DNA from: Perkinsus chesapeaki ATCC PRA-425 | Taxonomy: Eukaryota > Protista > Perkinsozoa | Assembly: GCA_013115145.1 (NCBI GenBank) | Contig: JAAPAO010000078.1 | Location: forward strand, 24,306 to 88,305 | DNA length: 64,000 nt | Direction of reading: 5' to 3' | Shown: piece by piece, positions 2,986-46,216 of the stretch | Layout: every line of letters starts with the position of its first letter | Numbering within the stretch: the first letter of the stretch is position 1 | Made by a program: the position numbers and the translations under genes | Notes under the pieces: generated by a model | Databases searched by the model: none | The model's input: the letters and a program-made list of their open reading frames with translations, nothing else | Told to the model about the DNA's origin: nothing

Positions 2986-4296
2986 CTACGCCGCCTTGAC
3001 CATTTTCGGTTCGTGTTTTCCGGTCTTGCATTTCGGTAGTGCCATAAAATCATCCCAATCATAGCTCCGTGCACCGCAGCATGACCACTCCTTCTTCAAG
3101 TCGTGGAAAACTGGCCTAAAATGCACCCCATGGGACTCGAACCCAAGCCAGTGGCTTCCCGTAAAGCGGCTGCATGCTCTACTGCTCCACTATTCCTCCA
3201 GTAGATTACTTCCCATCATGATAGTGGCAGCAACCTTCCACGTTATCCTCTGGATCATACTCCTTTCCGCAGCCAACGTGACAGCAGCGATATTTACCAG
3301 ACGGTGTAACCTAAGCCACATTCTTCACAGTGCGCAAAAGACTCCACCACAAATTATTCACAGTGCGCAAAAGATTCTACCACAAATTATTCACAGTGCG
3401 CAATCCTCCGAAGATCCCCCCATTACAAGCGGTTTCATTTCGACCTGCGGCTTTTCCTCAACCTTCTCCACTGACAAGGCCGGAGCTGGAGTATCTAAGG
3501 TCGAAGCCATCCGTCTGGACTATGAGCTCACAAAGATACTCTTGCTCTCCTTCTCAGTTGTGTCTATTCTAACAGGTGCAGACGACGGCATGGTCACCAA
3601 GCCGCTCGAATTAGTATCTATCCGTTGTGGGGTAGATGACTGTACTGATGCTGCCTGATCCTCAGCTTTGGCTTGACCAACACCTGAAATGCATCCACTG
3701 GGAATCGAACCCACGACCTTCAGCTTGTAATCCGCATTGCACACAGAAAACTTCGGCCTATGTTTTTGGATCCCTCCTCTGCGTTCCCGTACATATTCAT
3801 CGAGCAATTCGCGCAGCTCAGCCGAGGACGCTCCCTTCGTACAACACAATCGGATTGTGTTGTTGTGTTGTGACAATCCCAACACTAGCCAGTGGCTAGT
3901 AGCCACCAATTCTATGCGAATTTAATAACGAAACTTCACAGCCCCACTGCTGAAAGATATTCCACCCTATTACCCGGCTTCACTGGTTTAACATCCGTAT
4001 GCTCCCCAACTGCACACCCCGGAATCTGCATGAACTCATCCCAGTCATACTTTACTGCCTGCCATCCACAAATCTTACACTAACCTCGCTATAACCCCAC
4101 CTACCCCACAGCACGTCCATGTCTTTTTTATATCTTGGAACACGGGCCACCCTGGATGATACCGACATGCCTCAGGACCGTTGGTCGCATCAGTATACCT
4201 ATTCACCACATCACCAAAGCTCACACAACCATCCTATCACTTTTTACCGCACCCGTGGTGCCGACATGTCTTAACAACTTCACTGCTATCAGTCAT
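2986..4296 (-). CDS. Two-CHORD-domain zinc-binding protein (RAR1/CHORDC1-like, no CS domain seen)
   Basis: Spliced: MTDSSEVVKTCRHHGCGKKYTDATNGPEACRYHPGWPVFQDIKKTWTCCGAVKYDWDEFMQIPGCAVGEH, a linker, then YRCCHVGCGKEYDPEDNVEGCCHYHDGKPVFHDLKKEWSCCGARSYDWDDFMALPKCKTGKH. Both have the CHORD Cys/His pattern. Confidence 0.9.
3116..3209 (-). other. 94-nt GT-AG intron containing a degenerate near-full tRNA-like body (sense)
   Basis: Splits CHORD2 at HDGK|PVFHD. Contains A-box-like TAGTGGAGCAGTAGAGC and GGGTTCGAGTCCCATGGGGTGCATTTTAG. Confidence 0.85.
3324..3403. repeat. 33-bp minisatellite, about 2.4 copies, intronic
   Basis: TTCACAGTGCGCAAAAGA(C/T)TC(C/T)ACCACAAATTA units start at 3324, 3357 and 3390. 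Confidence 0.9.
3684..3973 (-). other. 290-nt intron ending in a tRNA-like anticodon/variable/T-arm segment
   Basis: A phase-1 intron joins KPVKPG to VGQAKAED. Its 3' end reads GCGGATTACAAGCTGAAGGTCGTGGGTTCGATTCCCAGTGGATGCATTTCAG. It also holds perfect palindromes at 3841-3863 and 3884-3900. Confidence 0.75.
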
Positions 4297-4464
4297 TATT
4301 CAACAGGAACTGTAAAACCCGAAACCCAAAACCCGAAACCCGAAAATAAAACCCGACAAGTGATCCATGAGTAAGAAACCGTAAACTGGACACGTCTCTT
4401 GCCTATGACGCCTCATCGGTTAGTGGTAAAGGAGACAACAACAGCAGCAAGCGAGGACCGCTTT

Positions 4465-6123
4465 TCAATTTTCAAACTTAGAGTTAGGAGTCTTCGGACT
4501 CGCCATTATTTTCATTCTTTCCTCCCCCATGCTATCCCCACTCTTTGGTGCGCTCAACAGACTCTCTGTGAACGTGAATTTCTCCTCTTTTGGGACCTGA
4601 AAAATACCTTTACCAGGATTCGAACCCGCGACCTCTTACCAATTTCAACAACGGTAATCGCATGACCAGTGCGACCAAATAAATATACGCCGTCACCACA
4701 AACGTGTAACGATAATCATGATTATCCATCAAATACCCCCCAATAACAGCCGAGCCAGACCAAGTCATCGACGACAGAGACTCCAAAGCATTCCACCTGC
4801 CACGTTGATGAGATGGCACGAAGTCCATAATAATCGATCTATCTACCGGATAGATAGCATTCTGCACCGCACCACGGATCAGAAAAGTAAAGACGACCGC
4901 CGGCAGCCATCTGACCCAGGCCAGACAGAACAGGCATATCACACCCATTGACGAGAAAAGTATCCCAGCTTGGACTCGACCGATGTGATTAGCAACTTTA
5001 TCACAAAACCAAGTGAACAAGCCAAATGTTAGGCCGTAAAATGCCCACAGTAGCTGCACTTGAGTTGGACTGAAATTGTAGTCGTTCTTGAAGAATAGAG
5101 GGAAGAACTTCACTGTCATTCCAGCTCCTATACAAGTGATAAAATCATTGGCACACATCAGATAAGGAATCGTCCATGTCCATTTAGACGTAACTTTCCT
5201 GTGCACGCGTCCACCTAAGATTCATACAGCTTCTCAACAATCTATGTAATATTCCCTATCACCTTCACGGTTGCCGCTGTTGCCGCCGAGGCCATCCTCA
5301 TGGCTCACATCTGTCCATCCAAACAAGAATAAATTAGCCGGTATAAAGCCCAGGAAGCCAATAATCAACACCGTATGCAGCACACTGAGCCTCCATGCAT
5401 TCCCAAAGTAAACAAACAGGAAGAGCCCGATGAATGGACCGATTCCCGAGGCTAGCTGATTCACCACAGAGGCCCAGGTCAGCCACTTGGCTCTGTGGCC
5501 TTGAGGGATCGAGTCCGCGAAAAGGGAATATGTTGCGCAGTTTTGGGTGGCGAAATAACCACCGGCAACGGCGAGTGCAAAACATAAAACTATAATCTGA
5601 AGAAGATATCTTCTGGAGGTCTTATGTGCACGCTTCGAGCTAAGATGCCATGATCATCCCCGTTATTACGTTATCGAAGTGTATTCCGTATATTGATAGA
5701 GCAACCATCACCAGTGATGCCCATCCGCATAAGCGACAAATCCGAGCTCGAGAGAATCTTTTAAAAAATATCCGACCTAAGATACCATCTGCATTAGCCT
5801 ACTTATCAACCAAGATTCCTGCGGGTATGGCCGCAATGACCTGACTCAACCCAGAAATAGATTCAGCCCAACCGACAGCTTTATTGGAATCACCAGCCAT
5901 CACGTAAAGGTAGGCGTCAAATATACCCATTTGGGCGATAGCTTGACAAATACCTTGAAGAGCTGAGAACCTAAAGAGTATCTATGTCGACCGTGCAAGA
6001 TACAAAATAGGTTGATGTCTACATCAACATGTGATAAATGTTCTTCTTGCATGCCTTTTCAAAGTCCTCTTTATCTGTTATTGGAGATAAGACTTGATGT
6101 CCCAGATGATTGGTAGTGGGCAT
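4465..6123 (-). CDS. Major facilitator superfamily transporter
   Basis: MPTTNHLG...FSALQGICQAIAQMGIFDAYLY...GILVD, many TM segments, DKVANHIGR (MFS motif A-like) and YPVDRSIIMDFVPSHQRGRWNA. Confidence 0.88.
4597..4639 (-). other. 43-nt intron that is essentially a tRNA 3' half (sense)
   Basis: GTAAGAGGTCGCGGGTTCGAATCCTGGTAAAGGTATTTTTCAG. Removal restores LLKL|VPKEEK and skips the stop at 4610. Confidence 0.85.
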
Positions 6124-8202
6124 CCTCACAGAGAATTATAGATACACTGCAAGAATAACAACAACCCCGATTACCCAACGCGCATGACTAGCAACAAGCA
6201 GTACCGTGTCAGAATCGCTACGCCCCGGTAATCGATTATGGTTCGTGCCTGCTGCTGCACTGTGACAGCTAGAGAACGTGACAGTTGAATTGTCATAGGC
6301 CAAGCGGACATCGTTCCGCTGATCGAGAATTATAGGTCTCACCGTATGCGGTAATCAACGAACACATCGTTCAACACTCACGGCATATACGCGACAGTCC
6401 AACTTCCTTCTTAAATGGAGACACATTGTACACATGCCAACACCATGACTGCCTTATCAAGCATGAACAAACAGCTAGAAAAGGCGTGATCCATAAAATG
6501 GGTATTACCCTGAGAGTAATTGAAAACTGTCCGAATTTACGTATATTCCATATATCAGCAAAACCTCGTGGGCCCAGTGTGTTCATGTTCATTTTGAATT
6601 TATAAATCTAGCGTGGGCGCAATCGGCAAACAACCTTGAGGTGACATGGTACAAGGAAGTCTCACTGATGGTGATCATAATATCAATCCAATGCTCTCAA
6701 TGGCAGGAGAGATAACGGTGACAATGGGCAGGAGAACAAAGCGAGGTACGCCTATGATGCCGCTCTTTGCAATTCCGAGACAGGCCTGCCGCCGTGTCAG
6801 TATCACCACCCGCCACCACGGTGTCACGGCCTTACTGGGTGATACTGTGAAGAAGGGTCCCAAGGGCTCTATACGATTTAGTGATTTTCGGACAGCCAAT
6901 ACAGGTCCGTAATAGAAATATAATCTTATACATCTGGTCCGGTTGTGTTCGTCATTACGTGCCAACTACAAAACGTCCCGCGGAAAAATGTAAGGATCGA
7001 GGAATGGCAGAGTGGTTATGATCTCGCGACCGCTACTTACCCTACTAAATCTTTTTACGCCCAGTGGTTGTCACCCACTGCGATGTCACAAGGTACGCAG
7101 TCGGTGGCACCGACTCGGTGCTGCATTCATACGAGGAGCTGAGACATATTTGCCAACATTTGTATTATCCAGACTGTGACTGTCGTTATTCCATGCCTCC
7201 TGGTATCAAAGAAAGCCAACAAGGGGTGACAGCCGATCACCCATTCTCGATGCCGCGAATGACAACACAACGCGCCTTTGTGAATGCTTGATAGGCTTCT
7301 CTAAGGCGTCGCTTCAGAGGAGATGTTCAGGCATTGGTGTGCAACAGTAGCGATATTCTTCCGAACGACCGGACTACAGAAGACATCAGTTTCACAATGA
7401 ATCATTCACTAAACCCAACTTCCAGACACCTAAGGTTCCCTCACTTCAAGAGCGCGACTGTGACTACTTTTCCCTCAGACTTGGAATTGTCCTGCCAAGG
7501 TATATTTTACTGGAACATGCATCGTTATACCGCTGGACTTTGTTGGGCTGACTCTTACTTGGCGAGCAGGGATTCCAGACAAAAGCTACATCGTCATCAA
7601 TGATAACGTATCAATTCTGGCATCTTCAGGGAATTGTAAAAGTTCGGTGCCATTCCTTAATTCGACAGTCGGCTTCCAGTGCTCTCCCGAGAAAAAGGCT
7701 CCACGCAGTTCTCAGTGGAGAGGAAGCTGTCACACACATCTTCAATAATCATCAACCCCCATAATCATTGCGCGTCTGCGAGGTGATACTCGCGGTATCA
7801 TTCTTGACCGTCGTGATTAAGACGGGTTAAAGGGTTAGAGGTTGGGTTACGGATCACTCGTCTTCGTCCACGTAGAGGAATTCCGAAAAAAATACCACGG
7901 AGCACTGGGAATGGTTCCCGCGGCTCCCACCCGTATTGTGGTCTTAGGCTAAGACCACAATATTAAGTCGCAGTTAAGCCATTTTACTGCGAAGCTTGGA
8001 TGCCTTCTAGAAAGAAGGGCGATCGACACGGTACATCATAGAGCCCGGGTATGGAAGATGAAACTTTCGTCATGAAAGGCCTATTCCCCGAGAGACAAGA
8101 TCTCCGGGACCCTGAATTCTACACGAAGTTCTCGTCAGGAACCACAGCCCAGGTTACTCTCGAGCTTCAATCCACTCACCAACTCAAGCTTTCGGCCTAT
8201 CA

Positions 8203-8946
8203 ATGAGATCTACATCAACTTGGTTATTGGCAGCTGCTTATATTATCATCGCCGCTGCAGCTCAGCCAGTGGGAAGATATGTTTATGCTGAAGAAAACGG
8301 TGCCTACACCCTCGCCTTCGACATCGATGAGGATAAGCGCGCCAGAATCAATTTCACTTCCCCTTTCGGTAGTTACTCCGAGGGTTCATACCCGTTGGTG
8401 AAGGAAAACTCAAGCGCGTATACTATAAACTTCACCGGCAGAATCGAAGGAGCGGGCTACTGGTACCTACGAATCGGGTTACTCTACGAGGACTACGCCT
8501 ACCAACCTGGTGACTTAAGGACTTTGACGTTCACGGGCAGAAATTCTCTGTATGTTATATTTGGTGGTAAAAGACTCAACTTGGTTAGACAGGCCTTCGG
8601 CGTGCAACAGGGTACTTTTATCTACAGTTCTGAGGGTCTTCATATGAACTACACAATCCAGCAAATCCCCTTACTACTGCCATTCCGTTTGCTTTATGTA
8701 CAATTTCATTGTGATAACACTGCGATGCCACCTACGCCGTTCTTCCTCTTTGAGAACAATACGGCTCGTCCCTACAAATCCTACACTCTTTTTCCACCGC
8801 CTGCCGGCTTACAGAGAGACGTCTCGAGGTTCTGTCTCAGAGACCGCCCTCTACTACCAAATGATCTGAGCTTCATCGTTTTTGCCACCGAGAAGACGAT
8901 TACCATCAACATGATCGGCACGTACCTTTCGCTCACCAAGGTGTGA
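8203..8946 (+). CDS. Single-exon secreted protein with two beta-rich repeats, lineage-specific
   Basis: 247-aa ORF with signal peptide MRSTSTWLLAAAYIIIAAAA. The two halves end in similar DLxxLxF...LxLxK/R motifs. Confidence 0.8.
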   Translation: MRSTSTWLLAAAYIIIAAAAQPVGRYVYAEENGAYTLAFDIDEDKRARINFTSPFGSYSEGSYPLVKENSSAYTINFTGRIEGAGYWYLRIGLLYEDYAYQPGDLRTLTFTGRNSLYVIFGGKRLNLVRQAFGVQQGTFIYSSEGLHMNYTIQQIPLLLPFRLLYVQFHCDNTAMPPTPFFLFENNTARPYKSYTLFPPPAGLQRDVSRFCLRDRPLLPNDLSFIVFATEKTITINMIGTYLSLTKV

Positions 8947-9773
8947 ACAATACGTCTTGATGGCCTAGACACTTGAACTGCAACTCACTTGCGCGGCTGC
9001 TGTTCTATCACTTATTAGATACAACGCTGTAGAAGGCTCTATTCTTTTGTTGCCATGAGATCTTTATCTTCTTAACTAACTGAATCCAGTGCTTGCGTCG
9101 TGTCAATGTTTTGTCGTTCAAAGAATCAGCCATATATTCCTCCTATGTCATCGTAGGTTTTCCACACTCCCTCAAAAGCGAATCATCGTCAGGTTACTGG
9201 CATACAAAATAAGTGGGTTTTCTCTTAGTTCCCCATAGACTCGTATGGGCTAAACGACGAGTCGTGATCTGTACACTTAGTCCGCTCCTGGGCATCACCC
9301 GTTTCCCTACTATTGTGTAAATGGCTGTCTGGCAACTAGACTCCAACGGGGGGAAATTCCGGCCCGTCAGGCGGCCGCCAGTGACGTGACATTATTGGAC
9401 CAATCCAATAACACGGTGTCTCCGGCACTCCAGTCCCCAAGTTTGTCTGGGAGCCTGAGATTTCTTGGGGTAAGCTAGATTATTATCACTTAAGTGCGAC
9501 TGGAATAGATACATCGCTATGAGCCATTCCTGTCGGTACTGGGTGAATTGTACCGATTATCACAACACACATTGTCTATATGAAGATTATCCTGTCATAA
9601 GTTGTGACTCACAACGTTGCAGTTGCCCTGTTACTGGTGTAACGCAAAAGAGTATCTTAGGTGAAGAGTACAGAACAGAGAAGTGAACGACAGATACTTC
9701 TTACACCAATGTGCGGAGTCTTACATTGGTTTTCCAGCCTCTTTCACGGATAAACAAAGAGCATGCGTACAGA

Positions 9774-9841
9774 ACTGTGACAGCATGCTGTCACAGTGCT
9801 CAGAGCACAGTGCACAGTAGTCAGCAGTGCTAGCACTGCTG
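9774..9841. repeat. Three adjacent perfect palindromes
   Basis: ACTGTGACAGCATGCTGTCACAGT (24 bp), GTGCTC-A-GAGCAC and CAGCAGTGCTAGCACTGCTG (20 bp). Confidence 0.9.
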
Positions 9842-9974
9842 TCTACTTGCTTATTTGCTCAATGACTGCCAAGACTATTTTGTCCTGGGGGCTATATGAG
9901 GATAGCCAATGCGATACCTGTAGAAACCATACTCTGGTAGTGTTCATAAGATTTGACGACTTGTTACCTCTTTA

Positions 9975-10364
9975 ATGAGATATCGTCTGAACTTCATTTC
10001 CTACCTGGCCGTGATTATAATCTATGCGAAGTGTATATGTAAGGTTTATGGAGTGGCTCCGAACGGGAAGTATTGTAAGAAAGTTCCCCTAGTCTGCAAA
10101 GTCGAACTAACCTTTCATGGAAACACCTTCGATGTATCTGCTACTTATGGGCTCAAGAAAGGATCGGCTATGGGTATCCCTTATACCATGCCTAACCCGG
10201 AAGTGGTGGAGATACCCATAAAGAACGAAGCTATTGTGAAGCTGTTTAATGATTTAAAGCCACCGGTGAAACTAGAGGAGCTACGATCCCTCGAGTATAC
10301 TAAGAATAGATTAAAAGCTCACACGAGCAAAGGCAACATAGCCTTCAAGAAAGAGAGTTGCTGA
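9975..10364 (+). CDS. Small secreted protein, paralog 1 of 4
   Basis: Signal peptide followed by PNGKYCKK...TFDVSATYGLKKGSAMGIPYTMPNP...terminal Cys. Confidence 0.85.
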   Translation: MRYRLNFISYLAVIIIYAKCICKVYGVAPNGKYCKKVPLVCKVELTFHGNTFDVSATYGLKKGSAMGIPYTMPNPEVVEIPIKNEAIVKLFNDLKPPVKLEELRSLEYTKNRLKAHTSKGNIAFKKESC

Positions 10365-11507
10365 AGGCTTGTCCGCTAGAGTCCTTAACCGCCTTCTAGT
10401 AGAAGGCTTTTAGTATATCAGTCGCGTAACTGAGTACACATTGTCAGAGTGTAATTTCAGTGGGACTCACCGGTGCTCCACCATTGGTGCAAGTTCTCAA
10501 CTGAGGAGAATACGTGGCTGAGATGTATTCTTGTGTAAATCCACCGGCTTTTTGATTCCGTGTACATTAGTCACCTCAGTAACATCCAATCCACTTCAGG
10601 GTGCCTACTTTAGTGGGTGCTCCCAAGTTGCTAATGCTGCTGCGGTATTATAGACTTGCGTTAATTCGCAGTGAGCCAGCAACAATCAGTAACTTTGCCA
10701 ACCCAAACTAGCCAGCGCTCGAAGTTATACCGACTACACGTCTTGGCGATGAAGAAATATTTTCAATCCCAGCACAATAATTGTGCCACAATTTTCCTTG
10801 AACTCTTTCTGGGGAGTTTCTCAAATACCCTGTCACCTTATCCTAGCACTTGAAGCATCGATACCCTGCGGAGCGATGTAATCGAGAAGCCGTTCTTCGC
10901 GAACTTGCTCTAACTAGTGCCATGTCCGGGACATTGTTATGATTGTAGGCCCTTTGGATGCAGCCGATACGTTCTAAGTTTGTGTTGTTTTATGTCCCAT
11001 TATGTCTGTGTAAACTTTTCCACTTAACCTTGTTCCGTTTATGAAGCTAGTGGATCGAGTGTAAACATATACGAATTACGTCAAGTTTTTATTTATTTCA
11101 ATATGATCAATCTTTTGAGTTCCAGCGCAAACGGTACGGATCACAACATATAACGTTGCTTATTCTGGGTAAGGAGTCGCGGAGCGTATAGGGTCTATTC
11201 CAGTACAAACTTGTTAATCTTAGTTAATATTGTTGATACTGTTAATTGTTGCTAACCCAATAGTCGCGGATGGGGATTTCCCGGGCGGCCTCAACCGGGA
11301 GCCAGCGATGCCTTTGTGGAGGCATAGAAGGATCCCTTCTCTTGTGAAACTTCCACGGCGAAAGTTGTCAAAAGATGAAGTTATGTTTGCAACTCTCCAC
11401 AATATGTCATCAATCTGCTGTTGCAGTGACGAGATGAGCGCTAGTGGCTCCTCGCTAACCCTGGTCCAGGATTCCTGGAGGCGATTAAAGTGAAATGGGC
11501 TTCCAAG

Positions 11508-11600
11508 TTCCGAGTCCGAGTGGTCGGACCCGAGGCACTTTAATTCGTACTTTTAACCCGAGCTCGGAAAACGACCTTTTCCGAGTACTTGGACTCGGAA
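11508..11600. repeat. CCGAG/CTCGG-rich imperfect inverted repeat (possible DNA transposon end remnant)
   Basis: Left TTCCGAGTCCGAGTGGTCGGA versus reverse complement of right TTCCGAGTCCAAGTACTCGGA (18/21). About 8 CCGAG/CTCGG motifs in about 105 bp. Confidence 0.6.
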
Positions 11601-12664: not shown

Positions 12665-13063
12665 ATGGTCTGCCTTCTCAACTTCATTTGCTTTCTACTT
12701 GTCGTTACGCTCTATGGAGATACATCGAATAATGTTACGGCTCCATGGCAGCCTGAGGGTTGGTATTGCAAGAAATTCCTCGTGGTGTACAAAGTTAACA
12801 TAACTTTCCGGGACGATACTTTTGATATAAAAGCATCTTATCTGTTGAGGAAAGGCTCTGCTACCAACCTTCCTTATACTATGCCACGTCCGAAGCTGAT
12901 GGAGATGCCAATCGACAACGAAGTCTTCATCAATCTTTTCGCGGCTGTAGATCCACCGTTCCCGATCGATGAGGTAAAATACCTTGATTATGATCATGAG
13001 AAGGAGGTATTGACAGCTTATACGAGAAAGGGTCAAGCGATTTTGACGCACGGGAAGTGCTAA
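12665..13063 (+). CDS. Small secreted protein, paralog 2 of 4
   Basis: Signal peptide, QPEGWYCKK...KASYLLRKGSATNLPYTMP...terminal Cys. Confidence 0.88.
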   Translation: MVCLLNFICFLLVVTLYGDTSNNVTAPWQPEGWYCKKFLVVYKVNITFRDDTFDIKASYLLRKGSATNLPYTMPRPKLMEMPIDNEVFINLFAAVDPPFPIDEVKYLDYDHEKEVLTAYTRKGQAILTHGKC

Positions 13064-22153: not shown

Positions 22154-23870
22154 ATGCCAGAAGTAGAATCAAAAAAGAGATCTTTAGATTCCGACAAGGT
22201 TAAGTCGAGCACACCCGAAGTTATCTTTGGTGATTCCAAAATCGAAGTTGCCGGTAAAATATCTATCTCACATTAATGCACAGTCCCCATCAGGTTTATC
22301 GGACCCCACAGAGGTCCCTCTTGCCCGGACGTTCGACGAGTCTGGTCTGAGAAAGTCTCTTAAGGAGTATCTTAGCTCCAAGTTTTCCACTCCTTCCGCC
22401 ATCCAAGCTGCCTGCTGGCCCCTCTTGCTTTCTGGTCTCGATGTCGTCGGTGTCGCTGAGACCGGCAGCGGCAAGACCCTCGGTTTCGCATTGCCTTTCA
22501 TGTCGAAGGCTATGAATAAAGGAAATGACGGTATGATGATGGTGTTATCTCCCACTAGAGAGCTGGCGAGGCAAATCCACGAGGTTATCGTTGACGTTGA
22601 CAAGAAGAAGCAAAAGTTGCCTTCAATTTGCCTGTACGGCGGCACTCCTAAGTGGGAGCAGCAGAAACAGTTGAAGGCTGATAAGCCTCGAATAGTGATT
22701 GGCACCCCCGGAAGGGTCTTAGATCTCCTCCAGGACGGCTCATTGGACTTCTCTAAGGTTAACTATGCAGTTTTGGACGAAGCTGATCGAATGCTCGACA
22801 TGGGGTTCCTACCGAGTGTCACGCAGATCTTCGGATATCTTCCATCGGCTGATAAGAGACAATCTCTTATGTTCTCAGCTACGTGGAATAAGGAGGTAAT
22901 AAGGTAATTTCGTGGCGAGTGAGGATTGGTCACAGGTACGAAGATTATCTAGAAAGTTGATGAAGCGTGAGCGCATTACTGTTACTGTTATGGGCAGCAA
23001 TGAGACCAAAAGCAACCAGGATGAGTTGACCGCCAATACTCGTATCACCCAGATGATCGATGTGGTCCACGATAGGAAGCCTAAGATGGACCGTCTATGG
23101 CATCATCTTGGTAACCTATGCCCTAATAAGGGAGTGTGGAAGGTAATATAAAGGGGATCGGAAGAGGAGGACTCAGCAATCGCCGGGATGTTGGAAATCT
23201 GTCACAAAGTCTATTTTTATACGAAGAGTGTTGGCTATCAGGTTATTGTGTTCGCACTGTATAAGAAGGAGGCAGCCCATCTCGAGCGATGCCTCAGGGA
23301 CTACTATGATGTAGTGGGTCTTCATGGCGACATGACACAGTCCGCTCGGGAGGCCTCTATTAAGCGGTTTACCGAGGGGCAAAATCTTATATTAGTAGCT
23401 ACTGATGTAGCAGCTAGAGGCTTGGATGTTAAGGACGTCACTGGTGTTATTAACTACACTTTCCCTTTGGTTATTGAAGATTACGTTCATAGGTGAGAGA
23501 GCGACGCAGGTTCGAATCCCAGGGAGGGCATTTTTCAGGATTGGCCGTACTGGACGTGCAGGGCGGACGGGCAAGGCTGTTACCATCTTGAATGCTGATG
23601 AGGAGAAGCAGTTCGCCTTCGATCTTAAGGGACTTCTTGAGCGATGTGGCCAGGAGGTAACTTCGGTAGCGGTTGATGGGGAGTACTTGGTATGGCCAGG
23701 TACCTGAGGCTTTGAGTAAGTTGGCAAACCAGACGGGTGGGTTCAAGGCGAGCAAGAAGAAGGTTCATCCCATTTATGGGGCATTCTTCAAGGATGAAGA
23801 GGAGATGGCAAAGTTAGAGGCGAAGAAGACTCATATTACCTTCTCGGATGATGATGAAGATGACGACTAG
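22154..23870 (+). CDS. DBP3: DEAD-box RNA helicase, Dbp3-like
   Basis: Q motif PSAIQ, AETGSGKT, PTRELA, GTPGR, DEAD, SAT, ATDVAARGLD and spliced YVHRIGRTGRAG. The C-terminus HPIYGAFFKD...ITF resembles Dbp3. Confidence 0.9.
23493..23538 (+). other. 46-nt tRNA-3'-half intron (sense) in helicase motif VI
   Basis: GTGAGAGAGCGACGCAGGTTCGAATCCCAGGGAGGGCATTTTTCAG. Removal restores HR|IGRTGRAG. Confidence 0.92.
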
Positions 23871-24318: not shown

Positions 24319-27300
24319 ATGCCTAGAGTCCAGGAGTATCGAATAGTCCTTCCAATGGAGGTCGAGCAATACCATGTTGCCCAGCTCTACATGGTCGCCA
24401 AGTCTAGCCTGGAAGATACTACTGGCGGGGCTGGAGTGGAAGTGGTTACAAACGAACCATATGATGATGGTAGTAGTGGTTTGGTGTAGTGGTTAGTATG
24501 TCAGCCTTTCTCAGGGGAGACCCAGGGTCAATTCACTCATAAGCGCATTTCTATCGCACCGTATTTGCCGTCTTGGGTAACATCATTGGTGAATCCTGAT
24601 TGGCTGGTATTCGACGAGAAGAGTTGGAATGCCTTCCCTCGGTGCCGTACGGTCTACTCTTGTCCGATGCTTAGTGAGTTCTCGATGGAGATTGATAGTA
24701 TGCATATTGAAGGCAATTGTACAGATGATAACGCTCTTAAATTGGATGGTAACAAGCCGACAGTTTTTACGCTTTTTCTATCAGTTTTTGCCAGATGCGG
24801 ATCTTGCTAAGCGTAAAATTGACTTCATCGATATCGTAAACGATCACATATCCAGCAGGGATTATAATGAAGAAGAAGACCCGTCAAAATGGCATAGCGA
24901 GAAGGTAGATGGAGACAAGCGTTCGGACGGGGAGATGCTGTTTGCAGCTCGACATGGGACCTTTGGAGTCTGACTGGATGCAGACGACTCAGCCGATCAT
25001 GACGTGTTACAAGGTACTAAGGGGAAGGGGGTTTGGTCACCTGGGGGCGGCGTCGGCGGGGGGGAGGTGTTATTACGTGCTGCTGCGATGTGATAATACG
25101 ATTTGATTGTCGATTCGGTGCTTAATAGTGCGGAGTGGAAGAAGCATGGAATAGTTACATTCGTTGCATGTGGACGTAGTTTATATCGAGTGTCATTCAT
25201 TTGAGTGGTTATCAGGTTATTCATGTTACCTGTAATCCTGGGTTTATGATGCAGAACAGAGTTGAAAGTTTTATAGTTAAAGCGACTAAGACAACTCTAT
25301 TCAAGTAGTAAGGGGATGGATACTTGATAAAGGGGCGAATCCTGCCCAGTCGAGAGGACATGACAATAATGCCAATGTAGAGTGTATTCAGCGATGGTCT
25401 GAAGCTGAATAACTGAGTTGAGTAGTTCAATTACTAACCATTATTTCCTTCGCCACATTGAGGCCGATATCAATTGGTTTCGATTGCCGTCGTTGGAAGG
25501 CTGTCGTTGGCCTTGCCGTTTTTAACAGCGTACATCACCATTTCTCGAAATTTACGCATTCTCTGTTGGCGTGGAAAGCATTGGTATTAAAGGACGTATG
25601 GGCTCCATAAGCAGCAGGAGTCGGATTGATTATTACCGTGGTTGGCTACCTTTACGCTACGTAGCTGGGGGGAGCAGGGTGGAATCTCGAACCTCGCAGG
25701 TATCATCGAAAATGTGTGTGCTGGGCGGATGAATGGGCCGATCTGACGATGGATGATATTCGATTGATGGAGGATAAAGTCCAGAAGAAGCTGCGGAAGT
25801 TCTGGAGGGACAAACGGATTGAGGAAGGCTTGGAAGTTGCCAGCGATTCTGACGCCAGCGAAGTGCAGGGGGAGCTGGAGGGCACCCCTACTGCGGATGA
25901 GGATGCCTCACCCGGCAGCGCAACTGGCCGCCGATCTCGAACTGCTAGTCGAGCATCAAGCAAAGATACCACCGGGTTGCTAACAGTTACGGCATCACCG
26001 GTGGATCCGGCTAGGACTAGTGTGAGTGCGAGTGTTAATAATGACATAGCGGCGAGCGGTAGAGTTGGGGCTAGCCATAAGTGCAGCAGCATCACTGGTG
26101 GAGGAAGCGGTGTGGAGGTTATGAGGGCTGGATCGCTGTTTAAATTGGGGGATGGTATTATAAATACCAGCTGGAATGAGAGGTAGTAGTGGGGGGAGGG
26201 AGGGTTGGTAATTTCGTGGCGCGTGACAAGGAATTGGGAATACTGTTGTAGGGAGGTAGTATGGGAATAGGATTTAATCTATTTTGTTACTCGTTGATGG
26301 GGTGCATGTTCGATCTTTACGTCGCGCGCCACGAAATTAGTTGGTGACGTGAACTCTGCTCTTCAAGGTTGGTGAAAAAGCATTTAGTAGGGTTATGATT
26401 TTGAGAATATCGTCGAATAGGTGGAGAGTCATCTCAATTACGATAATGCCGATCGGTGTTCGATGACCGAGAGGTGGGCAAGCATGCAGTCTGGCAACTG
26501 CTGCTGCTACCAGCTTATCGATCGAGAAAGGAAGGGGCGTAGTGCGTAAACAACTGCGAGGTGTTACTGCTTTTGGCATTCAAACTAGCACTGATGTGTT
26601 GTGAAGTGGGGCCTTGAATGATGTATGTTTAGATACTTTGTGCTGTCGGGATCTGTCCTGAGCTATTATAGAGATTCGAGGGAAGTACGACCGAGGGAGA
26701 GTATACCGATGAAAGGGGCTGTAGTGCAGTGGTGTGGCTCACATAAGGGAAGAGAGCATGCCTTTATAGTCGTAATAACGTCACGCGCCATGAAATTGTA
26801 CGGTTATTCAGATGCCCAAGGACCATCGCAGACAGGTTGTTGTGTCTGGTGGAAGCGAGGGCGAGACGCGTCAGTGGATGCTTTGGTGTCAGGAGGCCGC
26901 AGATAGGGCTACGGCCTCAACGACACCTGGGCCAACCATGGAGGCATCTCCTAAGGTGGCTATGGTAGCTGAAGGAGAGCCAAAGGGGGGCGAGGGAAAG
27001 GTGAGTGGCGGTCTTTGGAGGGAAAAAGCAGTGTCTATCTTAGGTTGAAGCGCGCTCTTCGGGTGGTGGAGTAGTTCGCGAGAAGTCTGTTGATAAGGCT
27101 GGGCCGTCGGTGTCGTCTTCGTCAGGGGGCCTTCTGCCAGATGCCTGTACGCGGTATTTGCCTAAAGACCCTTTAAGAGGAATGGAGAGCCTTCTGAGGT
27201 TTGCTAGATGTGGATATCAAAGGAATGATATGTGTATGGTGTAAGTTGCCGGGGGTGGGGATCGAACTCGGGTGGGATGCCTCTGAGCAGGTCAACTGAT

Positions 27301-29517
27301 CGAGGGTTGAGGATTTGGCGGCAAATGGACCCTGTTGATGAGGAGGCCGGTTTGACGGTTTTTCTATCAAAAGTGTGGTCTGAGGCTACCAGAGTGGATT
27401 TCTATTCCGTCCCTTTGTCTATCGCCTTTGCAATAACTACCCTCTCCGTTTTCGTCATCCTCACACTCGGTGCTTTACTGACACCTCTAGCTGCATTCAT
27501 CCTCGTAGTGTGGTCCAAATGCCTGCTGGAAGTGTTCCCTATTGCCGAGGCCGTCAGGGAGGGTACTTCCAGTGGTGTTGTGATCGGTGAGGTTGTTGTG
27601 CCCACCACCGACAGCAGCATGGTCGAAGCCGCTCTTTTGGATGTATCCGAGTGGCATCGTTGGAGTCCGGCGCTGAAGTCTGCCGCTGCCTACAGGCTGT
27701 CTACTACTGGTCTGGGTCTTGTTAAATACGGCGGAGCGGAGCTTACTGAGCGAATTATTCGTCCTAGAGAGGAGGGGCCACCTAGCGTAGGTCCATGCCA
27801 GGAACAGCAAGCTTGCCTGCCATCACTAATAGTGTTGCATTACGATAGCAAGGCAAATGAGAAGTACTTTTGCTGGGCGGTGTTCCCGGGCCCTAAGTCA
27901 GTGTCGGTGCTGATGCTGAGCGCTGGTGGCCCCGGGAGAGCCATAAGGGGCCTGAGGTTTGTGCGAGAGTATCTTAGCTCGCTGCAAGTTGCCCCTGTAG
28001 TGTGGCCGAGACCCTTGCCATCACTACCGGATATGTTTATGCCACGAGGGAGCCAACATGTTCATGCGAGAAGGAGAGGGTCTGGTGGATGGGTGGAGCT
28101 ACCGGTGCCTTATGGTGTTAAAGGCCTCGACTCGGCATTAAAGAGGGCATTGTTGCACAACTCAGAGGAGGCTATTGTTGGCGGTAGGGTAATGGCTGAT
28201 GAAGATGACCGTGGTGGAGCGGACGTGATGCCGACTCTTATGGGTGGGAGAGGAGGCGGAGCGAAGTTTTTTTATGGTTTTTGGTTTCAGCGTTGTCGCA
28301 TCTATTCATCCAATCGAGTGCGTATATGCCAAGAGCGAGCACGGCTATTGTTAATAACGATAGTTGCCGAGCGGTAGGTTTGAACCGGGGTCTTTTGGAT
28401 AGCAGTTGGGCGCTTCCCCCGCTGGGCTATAAATGTGTATTTCAGTTACAACTGGTGGGAGCGTGCATAGTGGCCAGTCTACAACGTCTTCTTTGTGCCC
28501 TTGAAAGCAGTGATGCCTTCCTAACCACATCTGCAGCAGCTGCCCGGACCCCTGGTTACCGAGCCATCATAACTCCTGGAGACACATGCCAATGCAAGAC
28601 GATCCCTCGAGCTGGTCGAGGCCATGGAGCTGATATTTGCTGGGAGGCAGTGGCGCCCGATTGTGCTCATTATTTAGTGACAGAGGAAGAGGGCTGCGGG
28701 AGATGGACGCAACGAGGCACGATAAAGTGAGAAAAATACCCTCGGTGGGATTCGAACCCGAGTCGTGCTACTGCAGGTTTGGTGTATCATTATTGCCTCC
28801 TACATTGAAGTACAGAACTACTGGGATAGCTCTCAACCTCACCGGAAAGCACTATATCGACTTCCTCAGTAGTGAAGTCAAAAATGCAGCGGAGCGGAGC
28901 TCTAAGAGAACTGCAAATAAAGGCATTACCGCCTTCGTGACAGAGCTACCACGGCTGGTAAAAATGCCTGTTGCCGGAATCGAACTCGAGACCTTCTTCC
29001 TCTCGTAGGTCTGTCGCCCATTGAGTGGTTCCTCCAAGCATTGCTTGTTACGTTGGGAGGGCAAAGTATCTATCAACATTCCCGGAGCCAACGGTGGCAT
29101 TTGCGAGCTCTCCATTGTGGATCCATCCAGCGGTAAGTTATCTCGCTGTTCTTGTTCAACCCGGATGAGGGAGGATTCAGGCCGAGTGGCTGGAGAAGTC
29201 CGAAACGGTCGTGGTGGCCTGCATAGTGTTGGAGAGGGCAATATATTCGACCGTGTGTGCTTCGATGGCGAGCCACTTTGGGTTAGCGGCCTGTGCCCCG
29301 AGGATTTAGCGGCGTCTTCCGAGCATGCCGCTGAAGCCTTCCCTCCAACGTCCCCAGTTGTCGAGATAAAGGTAGGGTGCCGGGATCGAACTTGGGACCT
29401 TTCAATCGCATACTTCAGGTTGAATCTAGCAAGCGTCTCTTGCCGACTGATTGTCATACTCATCGATTGATTGGTCGCCGGCGCCGGGTCCAGTCGACCA
29501 AACCATTACAGGAATAA
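24319..29517 (+). CDS. Multi-domain lipid-transfer protein: PITP + PH + START-like
   Basis: N-terminal MPRVQEYRIVLPMEVEQYHVAQLYMVAK and CWADEWADLTMDDIRLME (PITP), GSLFKLG...WNERYFVLSGSVLSYY (PH), GLRIWRQ...EWHRWSPALK (START-like). The 3' end is approximate. Confidence 0.75.
25661..25699 (+). other. 39-nt intron with degenerate antisense tRNA 3' fragment
   Basis: Removal gives YLYAT|YHRKCVCW. The reverse complement contains GAGGTTCGAGATTCCACCCTGCTCCCCCCA. Confidence 0.5.
26209..26339. mobile_element. 131-bp MITE-like element in an intron
   Basis: TIRs TAATTTCGTGGCGCG(T/C)GAC (19 bp, 1 mismatch), flanked by the direct repeat GTTGG at 26204-26208 and 26340-26344. Confidence 0.75.
27241..27290 (+). 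other. 50-nt intron with antisense tRNA 3' fragment
   Basis: GTAAGTTGCCGGGGGTGGGGATCGAACTCGGGTGGGATGCCTCTGAGCAG. Phase-2 removal keeps the frame into STDRGLRIW. Confidence 0.7.
28727..28776 (+). other. 50-nt intron with antisense tRNA 3' half
   Basis: Reverse complement: CTGCAGTAGCACGACTCGGGTTCGAATCCCACCGAGGGTATTTTTCTCAC. Splicing removes an in-frame stop. Confidence 0.8.
28958..29008 (+). other. 51-nt intron with antisense tRNA 3' half
   Basis: Reverse complement contains AGGTCTCGAGTTCGATTCCGGCAACAGGCATTTTTAC. Splicing removes the stop at 29006-29008. Confidence 0.8.
29372..29418 (+). other. 47-nt intron with antisense tRNA T-arm
   Basis: Reverse complement contains AAAGGTCCCAAGTTCGATCCCGGCACCC. 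Flanked by AG|GT at both junctions. Confidence 0.75.
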
Positions 29518-29635: not shown

Positions 29636-30457
29636 ATGCTCCTCACCGGCTCACTCCTCTTTTTTTGCTCGGTGTACGGAGCACCCTTGTGGGACTCTGA
29701 GACTTGTCTGGAGGAATGCCCCGAGCTGGCTCAATCCGTGGCACTGCTGGAAGCTTTGGTTCTATCTCCTAAACTAGCCGCGGCCGCTCTATCGGGGAGC
29801 TATCAAGCCGGGTGGGAGGAGTATTTGACGCTTCGATCAGATTGATTGCCGTGTGTAGGTATAAGGCGGTCCGCGAGGACAAGGTGTACTCATGTGTGGC
29901 GGAAAAGCTATGTGGAACGTGTTTAGAGGTGAGCAGGGATCGAACTTGGGACCTTTGGATGAGGATTAATAAGTTTGTTGCTCTACCGTTCGGCCAGGAA
30001 TCCACGTGCACGATTGGGCGATGCATTGTCGAGAATGTCGCATGTCGGGCCTTAACCGATTTCACCTCGGATCTAGTTAAGATATGTTACTGCTCGATTG
30101 GTGAGCCACGACCCTACCCTTCCCTCTCAACCATCACTTCAGGTTACAACATCGCTGTCTTAAATGGGATGGTTGACCCCCAGTGGTCATCAACTGACCC
30201 TCCCTTCTGCGAAGGTGGTGTGAATGCTCCTCAAGGAACAGCAGAGACTGTTCAGGAATCATGCAGAGGTCGGTCACCTCGTTGGTTTAAGTATCCAGTA
30301 TTTTGCATTGTTGGACAGCGCCGCAGTGTTGGCTATATGCGGCCGTTGCCACTCGGCTGAGAGGGAAAGGAAGTTCCAGAGGAATAATTTGCCTAATTTT
30401 TTCGCGAAATTTGTAGATACTTGTCAGAATTCCGGTAGACTTTCGGATAGGATATGA
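29636..30457 (+). CDS. Small Cys-rich secreted hypothetical protein, multi-exon
   Basis: Signal peptide MLLTGSLLFFCSVYGA and several CxxxC motifs. 3' end uncertain. Confidence 0.55.
29929..29997 (+). other. 69-nt candidate intron with antisense near-full tRNA body
   Basis: Reverse complement: CTGGCCGAACGGTAGAGC (A-box-like)...AAAGGTCCCAAGTTCGATCCCTG (B-box). It is in-frame (69 nt), so splicing is inferred from GTGAG/CAG ends. Confidence 0.65.
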
Positions 30458-32283: not shown

Positions 32284-35200
32284 ATGCCGCCGGTTTGGTT
32301 AATCTACTAGGGATTACTTTAATATTAGTTATCAATCTCCATTGTTCTATCGCTCACTGATAATATTGTTAGTATCTAGCACGGCACCTGTCCAGGTCAT
32401 GGTATAGTCCCGGATGTTTTGAGATTCATTATCATCCTTGCAATCAGGTCCTATGCTTCCTACAACTCTGTCGGCTATCAAACCATCCAGCAGCCAGTTG
32501 GCTATTCGAAGAAGCTGAGAGACTTCGAGAAGCAGAAGTTAAAAGGCAAAAAGAGACCGAGGAGAAAGAAGCGGTAAATTGATTTAAAATGCCGCGTGCC
32601 GGGTTCGAACCCACGCCATTTTAGTTTGCAGCAGTCAGTGCAGCTGCTCGCGCTACTGCTGACGTAATAGGGCCTCCTGGACCGCCAATCTGTCTGGACC
32701 GCGCGGCCACTATGGCGTTTTTGACAGCAGGTGAGCGTCACTCTGCCAATCGATTGATGTCACTCATGTCGTTTCAGTTCTTCCAACTCTTCCGAGCAAC
32801 GTCTATGCGGTAGGCATTGACTCGGGTTCGATCCTCGGCAGAGGTGTTTCTTTTATCAGGTTCTTAGCTCTGGTGTCTACCAAGGCCTTGAAGCTGGTAT
32901 AGTTAATAGCAACTTCGATGAGGGTATGAGGAGGGTCCTGCAGAACTATGCCATGGCTACCTCAGTGTAAGACACATATCGCCATTCTCAAAAGTACGGG
33001 CATTTGAAAATAAAATGCCGTACCTGGGATTCGAACCCGAGATCTCCGTCCCTGTACAAAGGGTGTGGCAAGAATGATGGGTTCTGATGGTAGGTACCTG
33101 GCTCACCGTAAATCGATGATAAGGGTTCATGGGACTAACGAGTCGGCGTTCCCAAGTAGATCCACTGGAACCAGACGAGCTCCGGCTGCAAAGGGAAAGA
33201 GGAAACGAGCAACAACAGGAAGAGGAGCAGCAGCAGCCAAACAAGCTTCTACTAGCTCTGAGGAGGTATGTGAGAGATAACGGCTGATAATTATACCAAA
33301 TTTCCGTCGAATCTACGGGCATATCCCTGTCCTAGCTGACATTAGTTATACCACAAGTGTTGCCATGATTTCCTGAAGAGCGCGCGTTGTCCTAGAGTGT
33401 GACGTGGGAAGATTTCCTGAGGGAGATTCGAGGCAGATTTCCGAGAGCAATGTCAACACCCTAAAGAGAGTGAAGGGTAGTTATTGCGAAAATATTTCAG
33501 AACGGTCAAGGTTCGAGCGAGGAGGCCAGCGTTGAGGCTACAACACCTGAATCGGATGAGAGTACTGAGCTATCAAGGCAACCGGTTCGGCAAGCTAGGA
33601 AGAAAAGGGTAACTTTTGACGGAAAAAACGTAAAAACTGTCTCGTTAAGGCGAAGGCGTCTTCATCCTCCGAAGTATCTGATGACGATGCGGCGGTGCCA
33701 AAGAGACGGTCAACTCGCCGGACTCGTGCAGCTGTGAAGGTAAGTAAGGTATTTCTGGACGCTCCTATGCAGCATTTAGACCGAGAGAGGAGCATCATCA
33801 TCTGAAGCTGAGGAGCCAGTTGCTAAGCGTGGTCGAACAAACAGGAGAAAAGGCAAATCAGCTGGCAGCGCGGGGGACAGCTCGGTGGTGAGCGCTACAC
33901 AAAGACTAGGGGAGGAACCGACAATGGAAGGCCGAGAACGAGTTGCGCTTGAGATGCTGGTGGAGATTCTACCCCCTACACTTGCACATGAGATGTAACC
34001 AGCCAACACACGAGACTTAGTCGTGTTTAACCGTTTGGCCATCAGGTTCAAGACTTTGTCCATCTGGCTTGATGGAGGGTTCGAAGTCTCCACGGTCACC
34101 AGCTTTTTCGAGTAGACCGGAACAGGGAAGTCTGTCATCATGATTTATAATTTTAGGAGGATTATCGGTCATTTAAGGGGCTGCGCTACAGTACCGATGC
34201 CAACTGATGGCGAACAAGATGATATAGATATTCACAAGGAGCACAGTGCCTTATTTGATACTTATACTGAACAGGAGCGTAGGGCGGAGCGAAGCGTTTC
34301 ATGTTTACACATTTGCCCTTAGGCACAGTGCTCTTTAATAGGCTGTATGATTTGGACCGTGCCGTTATGGAGGTATGCAATCGGCATCTGACTGACCTAA
34401 TCAGTGGAATACTTCTCAAACGGGAAGGTTCCAAGCAGCGGAAGGTGAGGGACGCTCCTTCCTGATGGGAAAGTATTGGATTCATCTTTCGGTGGGGAAA
34501 ATCAAGCGTAAATAAAAGATTCTATGTTCTGCGGTGGCTCATTGTGCGGCGCAATAGTGTACCGCTGTCAATTCTTGTGCCAGGTCATCAGCCAAGCGCC
34601 AAAGGCTGAAGGATGTAGAAGTTATGTTAGCCATTTGTAGGTTGAAAAGATACAATCAGTTTGTACTGGTCATTGTGTTAGATGCTTCCCATGCGAGAGC
34701 GCGGAGGCAGCAGTCTGCAAGGAGAGGCTTCTGAGGACGCCTCCTGGGATAATAAACAACACATGGTTGGGCGTGTCACTTGGTAAGCTGTAATTCATAC
34801 CGTATTTCCCTCGCATTCTCGTTCAATAAGGCACAGAGGAGGCACAAGACTTTAAGTATTTCCGTCGAAATCATAACGAGGAGGCTTTGTTCAATAATGA
34901 GGATCATAAATACGCTACCACTCTCACGGTGAAGTGTGTCTCATTGACGGTAGGCTCTCATGCGCATGCGTGCGCATTTTTCATACCGTATTTTCGTAGG
35001 TTCGTCGTCTAGAGAAGCTCCGAAAGAGGTTGGATGGGATGTCGCAGGAGCAAAAAGAAGCTTATCAGCTTAAAATGCCTGGCGACATCACAAGCCAGTA
35101 TATCGAACAAATCATTAATAGGCATGTATCTTATTCCGCTGTGGAATGCATGCTTCAACCCAGTTACGCATCAACAGCTATGGGTCAGAAGATGGCGGAA

Positions 35201-43873: not shown

Positions 43874-43949
43874 GGGGAAGTGTCTGCTGCTGACAGTATA
43901 CTAGATGAACTCATAACACAACACAAAAGGGGACATCTCAAACCACATC

Positions 43950-46216
43950 CTCATAGAAGCTCACAGGCACACCGACACGCAGGCACAGGGGGAGAGTATG
44001 CTCAGATTCACGCCACACCATATCGACTGGTTGATTGAAGACAACATGCCACATGGCTTCAATGTCACCGCTCAGGTCACCTGACGGTCGGGATAACGCT
44101 CTCCGGGCCGAACTCGAGGCCTACCTCTATTGAGTTCGGTGTCGGTGCGTAGGCGCTCCCAAAACTGTCTGGGATGGACGTGGGCAAAGTCTCGTCGAAC
44201 TATGTATTGACCGGCCTCGTAAAAGCTTAGAGTGTCCTCCCAATCCTTGGGGAACTCTGAACCTGATCCAGGAACGAGCTTCACACCGTGAACGCCTCTG
44301 GTCGAGATTTCTTCTATTATGCCTCCTCCGCATCACCAGTAATATATTCCTTATCTAACCTTAGGCTCATTGCAGGCACTATACCACCCCGAATAACAAT
44401 CGCCAGGAGCCGCGATGGCCTCTATGAACATAACAGTTACCCCAAATTCTCCTCCATGCCCAACGGAACGGCTCCAGCCTAATCCGCTTCGGTCGGAATA
44501 TGAACTGCTGCGACAGGGGCTGAATCACAGGCTTGTGATCAGCGGCAGCTTGCTGGCAGGAGGAGGAGTATTCTTACATAAACGCCAAGGGACTCAACGG
44601 CAAAGTCACTTCCTCTACTGATGAGCTTAAGTGCTCGTGATAAAGCTATGAAGTCGTCACCTGAAGAAATCATTATACCATATTTCCGTCAGATGATGCT
44701 GCTGCTGCCTTGATGCTCATCTGAATCTGGATGCATAAATAGTAGCCAGTCGGACAGGGCATAATAGTACCTATACCAAATATGACCCAGAATGAAAGAA
44801 TACTTTTCGCGTATCAGTGGTCACCTGGTAACTCTTAACCAGGATACTGGTAACCGAAATTAATCGATAACCCCGAAGCATCGTGGGCACCACCGTTACC
44901 ACGTTGCTTCCACAGTCACCTTTAAGGCCCCCTTTCGGAAAGCTCCAGACGAACTACTCAAGAAGCGCGGTTTTATCCTGGTAGGCGGACGCATAGGAGG
45001 CAAGGGACCCTGGTGCAGACGTGGTAAGATTTTGAATTTGGAAATGACAAGCTGGACACAGGAGCCGAGCATGCTCGCTGATAGTTAGGGAATCCGCTCC
45101 TAGGCGACGTAGACATGGTAGTAGTGTGTGGAGCTACTTAGCTATATGATGGAAGTAGGCTGATTGCTCCTCCCTACTAGGACCGCCTGTGAAGTACTTC
45201 TCAATATGAACTGACCTGACTTAAGTACTGCAACAACAACACTCTCCCACCACCGCCACTGACCGGAAGTCCAAGCCTGCCAGCAGCTTCAGTATGTGAT
45301 CCATGGCATCCTTGTCGCAATGTGGTTGCTGTACCAGATAGATATGGACATTAACAAACCCCCAATAAGGCATCAGTGCTGGGGACCTACATAAGGGATT
45401 GGGGATGGAGGTCAAGTGGGAGCAGCTGGGGACCTGAGCCACTTCATCGGTTGTGTCATATTCCTCCAATCAACGCTCTGGCAGTAATTAAGGATCATAT
45501 CACCCGACAGGTCCCGGGTTCGAACCGACCGACTTTCAATTTCTAATAGTCGCTGCACTAAGGGACATGATATCCTCTTCCCCACAAACCGACGGTGACC
45601 TCTACGCCGGCCGCCACTGGCCAGGTATCGATGTCTCCGCTCGTGATGGCGCTGGGGTCTCCAAGGAACTCGAGAGATGTGCTCAAGTAATGTGCAGTCA
45701 TTTTCGCGTATTGCTCTTGGTCGAGGGGCGCTGTCTGTTCGAGCTTCAAGAGAACTGCCTAATATCGTGGCGCGCGGGAAAATCCAAAGGGTGTTCAGGC
45801 TACTTGAAGGATGGCAACGGTGCAGTTACGTTTAATGTTCCAGCTTTCGTAGACGGTAGTTAACATGGTGGTGTATCTTAGGTTGAAGTAGGAAAGATAC
45901 AAAATAGGTTAGATTAGGTGCGCATTCGAAATCACTGGCTTACTACTCGGCCTCCATCTCGCCAGTGCGATAATAGTAATGAGCATGATCTCTGACTTCC
46001 TCTAGAAAACCGCCGTCCAGACAAAACTCAGTCGGAGGCCCCGATTGCACCTTTCCTAAATAAGACACTAGAGCCGTAACAGAAGCAGCCTCGTAGCCAA
46101 AGCTTGCCTTCGATGGCCGAGACGATATCTCTGACACCAACCGCCATGGCGAAAGCAGCAGTGATGAGAAGGAGGGATAGAGTGGCAAGGAGAGGACGGC
46201 TATGATGAGGGTACAT
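43950..46216 (-). CDS. Hypothetical protein with signal peptide, multi-exon
   Basis: MYPHHSRPLLATLSLLLITAAFA followed by a series of minus-strand exons. 3' boundary approximate. Confidence 0.5.
45478..45566 (-). other. 89-nt candidate intron with antisense tRNA-like segment
   Basis: The plus strand reads ACAGGTCCCGGGTTCGAACCGACCG. Splicing on minus gives GRGYH|SVDWRN. Confidence 0.55.

Follow-up and report, generated by a model that had tools for sequence, protein, structure and literature searches.

A stretch of 64,000 nucleotides (nt) from Perkinsus chesapeaki ATCC PRA-425, a parasite of shellfish (GenBank assembly GCA_013115145.1, contig JAAPAO010000078.1, positions 24,306 to 88,305; hereafter the window) raises the question of why short introns in unrelated genes carry the same piece of a transfer RNA (tRNA) gene, and whether that piece is mobile, is a source of introns or has kept a function. 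A first-pass annotation, made from the letters of the window, had listed about 14 tRNA-like GT-AG introns and attributed them to a mobile introner, a repeated element that creates introns. Thirteen of the 14 places are relics of tRNA-gene tails inside introns and the fourteenth (45478-45566) is coding exon. The relics appear to lie in spliceosomal introns, and most seem to hold the last third of the gene, comprising the variable loop, the T arm, the 3' acceptor strand and the T-run of the RNA polymerase III (Pol III) terminator. Coordinates are given as positions within the window, genome-wide counts refer to the 41.7-Mb assembly, and the intron status of the relics is based on homology, reading frames and annotated gene models.

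Derivation of the relics from tRNA genes

A scan for the T-arm motif against shuffled sequence, which the first-pass annotation had proposed, yielded 11 matches to the B box GGTTCGAWTCC in the window at no more than one mismatch, where 2.0 were expected; none of 100 shuffles reached 11. The slightly wider pattern GGTTCGAWYCC, again with up to one mismatch, gave 22 matches at 16 window loci and a single match in a reversed control. Genome-wide, the exact 11-mer GGTTCGAWTCC occurred 768 times as against 35 in the control. The first 60 of these exact matches comprised 10 intact tRNA genes and 50 relics, the latter forming the relic sample used below.

Alignment of the listed window copies on the T-loop showed a shared unit: an AGGTC-like variable loop, the B box, an acceptor-like strand ending in GGCA, GGTA or TGCA, and a T-run. 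Informative sequence in the 50 relics was limited to approximately 10 letters 5' and 26 letters 3' of G52, and the informative positions were those universal to tRNAs, namely G46, C48 (44 of 50), the B box and C72/A73, followed by the terminator. The profile of the sample showed a GGCA-like end after the B box, and TTT stood directly after position 73 in 31 of 50 relics compared with 2 of 50 in a control window. The order of variable loop, B box, position 73 and T-run is kept at exactly the spacing of a tRNA gene, with the B box at positions 52-62 and the terminator immediately after position 73. The units are derived from tRNA genes.

As had also been suggested, most relics are truncated at the 5' end; a few copies are nearly full length, and longer tRNA bodies are present in the introns at 3116 and 29929. 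An A box with at most one mismatch was found at the right distance in 6 of 50 relics, 1 of 50 control sequences and 7 of 10 real tRNAs, while the A-box pattern was not enriched in the window (6 occurrences, 6.05 expected). No CCA end was found in the relics, which implies that their source was a tRNA gene or its primary transcript as opposed to a mature tRNA. The tRNA genes retrieved for comparison covered only Arg, Cys, Gln, Ile, Leu, Lys, Thr and Ser.

The relics no longer resemble tRNA genes closely enough to be recognised as such by standard means. ARAGORN returned 0 tRNAs in the window, and the Rfam tRNA model gave no match within 27200-30050 even at E values up to 10. T-stem pairs at positions 49-51/63-65 numbered 67 in the relics, where shuffled sequences gave 63.2 ± 4.8 and real tRNAs 29 of 30. 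Pairing at the level of chance indicates that the tRNA-like hairpin is not maintained. A function as an RNA hairpin was therefore excluded, since T-stem pairing beyond the two G-C pairs inside the B box does not exceed chance.

Relic ends and splice sites frequently coincide. A splice site adjoins the 3' end of the relic in 30 of 50 cases, compared with 12 of 50 in a shifted control, and the same arrangement was seen in most introns of the window, but not at 32965-33061, where 29 nt separate the relic end from the donor upstream of it. Relics occur in either orientation, as first reported. In sense relics the T-run is followed by the AG that forms the acceptor; in antisense relics the donor is formed by sequence complementary to either the T-run or the acceptor strand. 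Eight of the introns had been described as followed by GT, a count that is correct. An AG|GT duplication as the footprint of a target site was nevertheless rejected, as 8 of 13 relic introns and 4 of 16 element-free introns show it and the difference is not significant (p = 0.067).

Two further occurrences of tRNA sequence were noted. A 35-nt intron of the PITP gene (24470-24504) resembles the 5' part of a tRNA and contains an exact A-box match (TGGTGTAGTGGTTA), indicating that tRNA front halves occur in introns too. Elsewhere in the genome (G000:C2943 and C2831), tRNA-Arg(TCT) genes form dense local arrays, in which over 15 near-identical copies are packed into a few kb in both orientations.

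Age of the relics and conservation of the B box

The proteins nearest to those of the window are from P. marinus and P. olseni. Sequences syntenic to the window were available from P. marinus (L031 and a second haplotig, L123) and, for parts of it, from P. olseni (L124, L126 and L127). Ten relic loci could be compared with one or both species, a motif being counted as recognisable when at least 7 of 11 B-box positions matched. Nine of the ten keep the motif, in an intron at the corresponding position, in P. marinus, P. olseni or both, the exception being the very degenerate copy in the PITP gene. The check for presence or absence in orthologues that had been proposed at first pass thus shows relics that are mostly shared, with no sign of recent gain. 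Relics in the MFS-transporter intron and in CHORD intron 3 are conserved in all three species.

The divergence of neutral sequence places these loci in perspective. Four-fold degenerate sites of P. chesapeaki and P. marinus are 36% identical (409/1127). The interiors of 21 relic-free introns are 50.6% identical to their P. marinus counterparts under optimised alignment and 44.2% identical to mismatched partners; the margin over mismatched pairs is so small that neutral sequence can be regarded as scrambled. By comparison, B-box positions 52-62 are 81% identical to P. marinus (71/88, binomial p = 5e-9) without any optimisation of alignment, the relics having been chosen in one species and then scored in the other. 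The canonical B-box consensus leaves positions 59 and 60 free, and these vary here too; C48 is kept in 8 of 8 relics. A stand-alone B box is conserved between species. Judged by these sequence comparisons, the relics are ancient and predate the divergence of P. chesapeaki from P. marinus and P. olseni, and purifying selection has kept the B box in either orientation.

The relic introns of the window

The introns are listed in Table 1. The first-pass bounds required revision at the entries beginning at 3116, 3684, 25661 and 32994, which are corrected to 3116-3209, 3684-3973, 25305-25699 and, most likely, a start at 32965; at 3684, given as an intron of 34 nt, the 3' splice site was right and the 5' end wrong. 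The end of the intron at 29372 was moved to 29418, and two relic introns had been missed (28374-28445 and 53329-53375). Most of the introns had been given as 39-69 nt long; after correction, nine of the 13 measure 43-69 nt.

Table 1. Introns with tRNA-gene relics in the window, and one rejected item
Feature	Position	Length	Strand	Relic
CHORD-gene intron 6	3116..3209	94 nt	(-)	Sense, longer tRNA body; B box 3133-3143; T-run + TAG = 3' splice site
CHORD-gene intron 3	3684..3973	290 nt	(-)	Sense, last ~40 nt of intron (3684-3722); B box 3701-3711; T-run + CAG = 3' splice site
MFS-transporter intron	4597..4639	43 nt	(-)	Sense; B box 4616-4626; Pfam MFS_1 on flanking exon
DEAD-box helicase intron	23493..23538	46 nt	(+)	Sense; B box 23509-23519
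PITP-gene intron	25305..25699	395 nt	(+)	Very degenerate antisense B-box-like stretch at 3' end, ~25680-25692; weakest member
Intron	27241..27290	50 nt	(+)	Antisense; B box 27258-27268
Intron, absent from first-pass list	28374..28445	72 nt	(+)	Decayed antisense; TTCAAA core 28376-28386
Intron	28727..28776	50 nt	(+)	Antisense; B box 28748-28758; frames of flanking conserved exons
Intron	28958..29008	51 nt	(+)	Antisense; B box 28976-28986; donor GTAAAAA = T-run complement
Intron	29372..29418	47 nt	(+)	Antisense; B box 29382-29392; flanking exon frames fit 47 nt
Intron	29929..29997 (alternative acceptor 29973)	69 nt	(+)	Near full-length antisense; B box 29936-29946; A-box-like stretch 29983-29996
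Intron	32574..32624	51 nt	(+)	Palindromic, centred on TTCGAA (32601-32612); acceptor-like + T/A-run arms on both sides
Intron	32810..32861	52 nt	(+)	Sense; B box 32825-32835
Intron	32965..33061	97 nt	(+)	Antisense; B box 33027-33037
Glu/Gln-tRNA synthetase intron, absent from first-pass list	53329..53375	47 nt	(+)	Antisense; B box 53343-53353, one mismatch
Coding exon (rejected item)	45433..45561		(-)	B-box-like palindrome inside (encoding SVRTRDL)

Excision of CHORD intron 6 restores the CHORD-II motif and agrees with the annotated protein P0033; its relic has a weaker B box in P. olseni and is lost in P. marinus. For CHORD intron 3, the alignment to homologues begins at the residue directly after the AG at 3684 and the donor, at 3973, is 290 nt upstream; P. 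marinus and P. olseni have the relic in introns of 61 and 103 nt, respectively. When the CHORD gene was compared with those of Vitrella and Tetrahymena, both relic introns occupied positions without a counterpart and are Perkinsus-specific. The sole intron in common with Vitrella is relic-free; three of the four relic-free introns are lineage-specific too, and the comparison of positions in this gene consequently does not settle the origin of the introns. CHORD intron 5 (116 nt) holds approximately three tandem copies of a unit of about 35 nt (3322-3400); its P. marinus and P. olseni counterparts measure 45 and 82 nt, respectively. A short telomere-like repeat of AAACCCG-type units (4318-4345) lies between the MFS and CHORD genes.

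The MFS-transporter intron has orthologues in P. marinus (58 nt) and P. olseni (59 nt), which also contain the relic. Excising 23493-23538 restores motif VI (HRIGRTGR) of the DEAD-box helicase, whose exon upstream of 23493 stops at position 101 of 110 of the Helicase_C profile; the P. marinus assembly has a gap at this intron, which was left out of the comparison with that species. Between the two genes lie approximately 16 kb (6124-22199) that P. marinus L031 lacks; there, the MFS and DEAD-box genes are separated by only about 500 bp. The open reading frames (ORFs) of this segment gave no Pfam match and no relic was found in it.

In P. marinus the orthologue of the PITP-gene intron is 44 nt long and in the same phase. 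The six relic introns of the gene at 26.8-30.3 kb (27241, 28374, 28727, 28958, 29372 and 29929) are backed by frame changes between conserved exons, by in-frame stops, or by lengths that differ from those in P. marinus by a number not divisible by three. The intron at 27241 shifts the frame between conserved exons, substitutions in its flanks are of the coding type, and its relic is nearly unchanged in P. marinus. At 28374, where the annotated protein P0001 skips the stretch, the P. marinus orthologue is 89 nt long with a fuller relic. Orthologous relics were also found in P. marinus for the introns at 28727, 28958 and 29372; that at 28958, read in the frame of its flanking conserved exons, ends with an in-frame TAG stop. 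The orthologue of the 29929 intron is 74 nt long and has an in-frame stop and a decayed B box. The reading frame differs across the synthetase intron at 53329, where the next exon matches Pfam tRNA-synt_1c and the P. marinus orthologue, also of 47 nt, has an exact B box.

The three introns at 32574, 32810 and 32965-33061 were assigned on in-frame stops and ORF restoration only, and fall outside the comparison with P. marinus as both of its haplotigs have gaps at 32574-33061. A start at 32994 leaves an exonic stop codon, whereas a start at 32965 restores a long ORF. The intron at 32574-32624 has the structure of an inverted duplication, with the TTCGAA of the T-loop at its centre. In 32965-33061 a stretch after the terminator complements the acceptor strand of the same relic, and the two can pair as a hairpin. 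Both arrangements could have arisen by fold-back events or from tandem tRNA copies.

The interval 45478-45566 was rejected as an intron: it overlaps a coding exon whose 43 codons encode a protein segment 86% identical to that of P. olseni, and the differences fall 8/2/14 over the three codon positions. The B-box-like palindrome in this exon is probably due to chance, although it could be an exonised relic.

Several gene models of P. marinus and P. olseni (on L031, L123 and L127) conflict with the conserved frame at relic introns. Among them, P0001 omits coding sequence before 27241 and P0029 lacks part of CHORD-II.

Origin of the introns and a candidate reader of the B box

These observations are probably best explained by ancient introns derived from tRNA genes, in which the T-run of the terminator was taken over for splicing and selection has kept the B box, most likely through putative docking of TFIIIC. 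In the sense orientation, the T-run beside the old 3' end would act as the pyrimidine tract ahead of the AG; an antisense relic would bring the complement of either its T-run or its acceptor strand up against the GT donor. As these parts would supply the splice signals, the relic would amount to nearly the whole intron in the shortest cases. The 11-letter B box would still dock TFIIIC on the DNA, as at the extra-TFIIIC (ETC) sites of yeast. Its retention in both orientations relative to the host gene fits a reader acting on DNA; TFIIIC is the candidate reader suggested by the motif itself, and a match to Tau95 was present in the genome at G000:C3278, near 2559-2660 (E = 5.6e-10).

A number of points weigh against this explanation. 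Positions flanking the B box are 51-58% identical, above the neutral level, and the B box is not the sole constrained part. Nor is the constraint universal: P. marinus has lost the relic of CHORD intron 6 and retains only a decayed B box at 29929, and P. chesapeaki in turn shows decay of two relics seen in the other species. The 50 relics were drawn from 60 copies picked for a perfect motif. An exon-by-exon search of the genome for the B-block and delta families of TFIIIC (PF04182 and PF12657), both poorly conserved, gave no match, and the B-block-binding subunit went undetected. The core of the B box is palindromic, so that orientation independence alone leaves a role in the transcript possible, and splicing was inferred from homology, frames and gene models in place of RNA junctions, the RNA runs X1 and X2 containing nothing from this region.

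The mobile introner proposed at first pass would be an active or recently active unit of tRNA origin, still spreading or being retroposed and making introns as it goes. Such a unit would agree with the many copies in unrelated genes and both orientations, with splice signals at the relic end, and with the two CHORD relic introns that have no counterpart in Vitrella or Tetrahymena. Introner elements are known from Micromonas, Aureococcus, dinoflagellates and Amoebophrya (PMC7789003, PMC11282704), and the relics are like them in that repeats lying either way round make up entire introns of unrelated genes and help to supply the splice signals. Introners, however, form families whose members are nearly identical and are lineage-specific or polymorphic, and they usually bear terminal repeats and target duplications, whereas the relics share only the positions universal in tRNAs, are old and are common to species. 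No near-identical copies were present among the 50 sampled relics: the closest pair shares 16 of 21 non-core positions, and the distribution of similarity lies near that of a column shuffle. Inspection of the window introns by eye revealed no consistent target-site duplication and no transposon features, and a search of the P. chesapeaki assembly for a second haplotype or an insertion polymorphism returned the window alone. Moreover, nine of ten comparable loci are common to species whose neutral sites are saturated. A unit still in motion is accordingly very unlikely and, because no near-identical copies were found, no currently or recently mobile introner is indicated.

Two further explanations concern the conservation of the motif. 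The palindromic UUCGAA core might act in the transcript during splicing of very short introns, for example in the branch-site region or as a site for an RNA-binding protein. The core lies approximately 20-30 nt upstream of the AG in short introns of both orientations, reads identically in either, and in some sense relic introns is accompanied by no other branch-like motif. It would pair poorly with the conserved U2 branch-binding sequence, though, and pairing of the stem has been lost. A transcript-level role is rated lower, and considered unlikely, because relic-free introns of neighbouring genes have only loose branch-like motifs and nothing like the 11-mer, and because the conserved positions are those of the canonical B-box consensus, its two free positions included. 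Alternatively, the relics may be neutral and without present function, their apparent conservation being an effect of biased ascertainment or mutation, or of gene conversion by real tRNA genes. Some relics have indeed decayed in one species, and the copies were located by searching for the motif itself. Against this, relics chosen in one species and scored in the other retain the B box far above four-fold sites while intron interiors are unalignable, and conversion tracts of 11 letters in hundreds of scattered introns would be implausible; neutrality appears highly improbable.

Among known systems, tRNA-derived short interspersed nuclear elements (SINEs) share with the relics a tRNA ancestry and a scatter through genes. 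SINEs consist of the 5' head of a tRNA with A and B boxes, a body and a tail, whereas the relics are the 3' third with a terminator directly after position 73; a SINE was ruled out, as no information remains beyond about 10 nt upstream of the B box and a terminator closes the unit. tRNA pseudogenes and tRNA genes nested in introns are similar in having tRNA-gene geometry, terminator included, and a few near full-length copies. The relics are unlike tRNA pseudogenes in being missed by both ARAGORN and the Rfam model, in often forming the whole intron, and in the selective retention of one motif. B boxes that stand alone, with no functional tRNA gene, and are conserved between species occur in yeasts at ETC and chromosome-organising-clamp sites. 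The relics appear, from sequence, to be isolated and conserved B boxes of the same kind; yeast ETC sites number in the tens and are mostly intergenic, whereas the relics number in the hundreds or more, are intronic and are visibly derived from tRNA gene tails.

With regard to the introns themselves, birth from inserts fits the data, and co-option after landing in older introns that later shrank fits also. The relics may have created introns long ago; their insertions would then have made these introns as opposed to landing in existing ones. A more far-reaching version, possible but doubtful at present, is that an early burst of tRNA-gene insertions made a large share of the short introns of Perkinsus, and that their B boxes then became hundreds to thousands of putative intragenic docking sites for TFIIIC.

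The short introns made largely of tRNA-gene tails suggest an undescribed source of introns together with a retained function. They apparently represent an undescribed type of insert-derived intron in which a Pol III promoter motif is conserved. The literature covered, which did not extend to subscription journals, contained no account of introns derived from tRNA in Perkinsus. The origin of new introns has long been a subject of enquiry. To our knowledge, transposon-like introners are the sole well-documented mass source of introns to date, and tRNA genes or their primary transcripts would appear to be a second raw material for new ones. In practical terms, the relics mislead gene prediction, several P. 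marinus and P. olseni models disagreeing precisely at relic introns. P. marinus can be cultured and transfected. The long retention of a Pol III promoter motif in genes transcribed by RNA polymerase II (Pol II) suggests a link between TFIIIC and the architecture of genes and introns in an alveolate; if this is true, TFIIIC docking sites could shape chromatin or the progress of Pol II, helping to define tiny introns.

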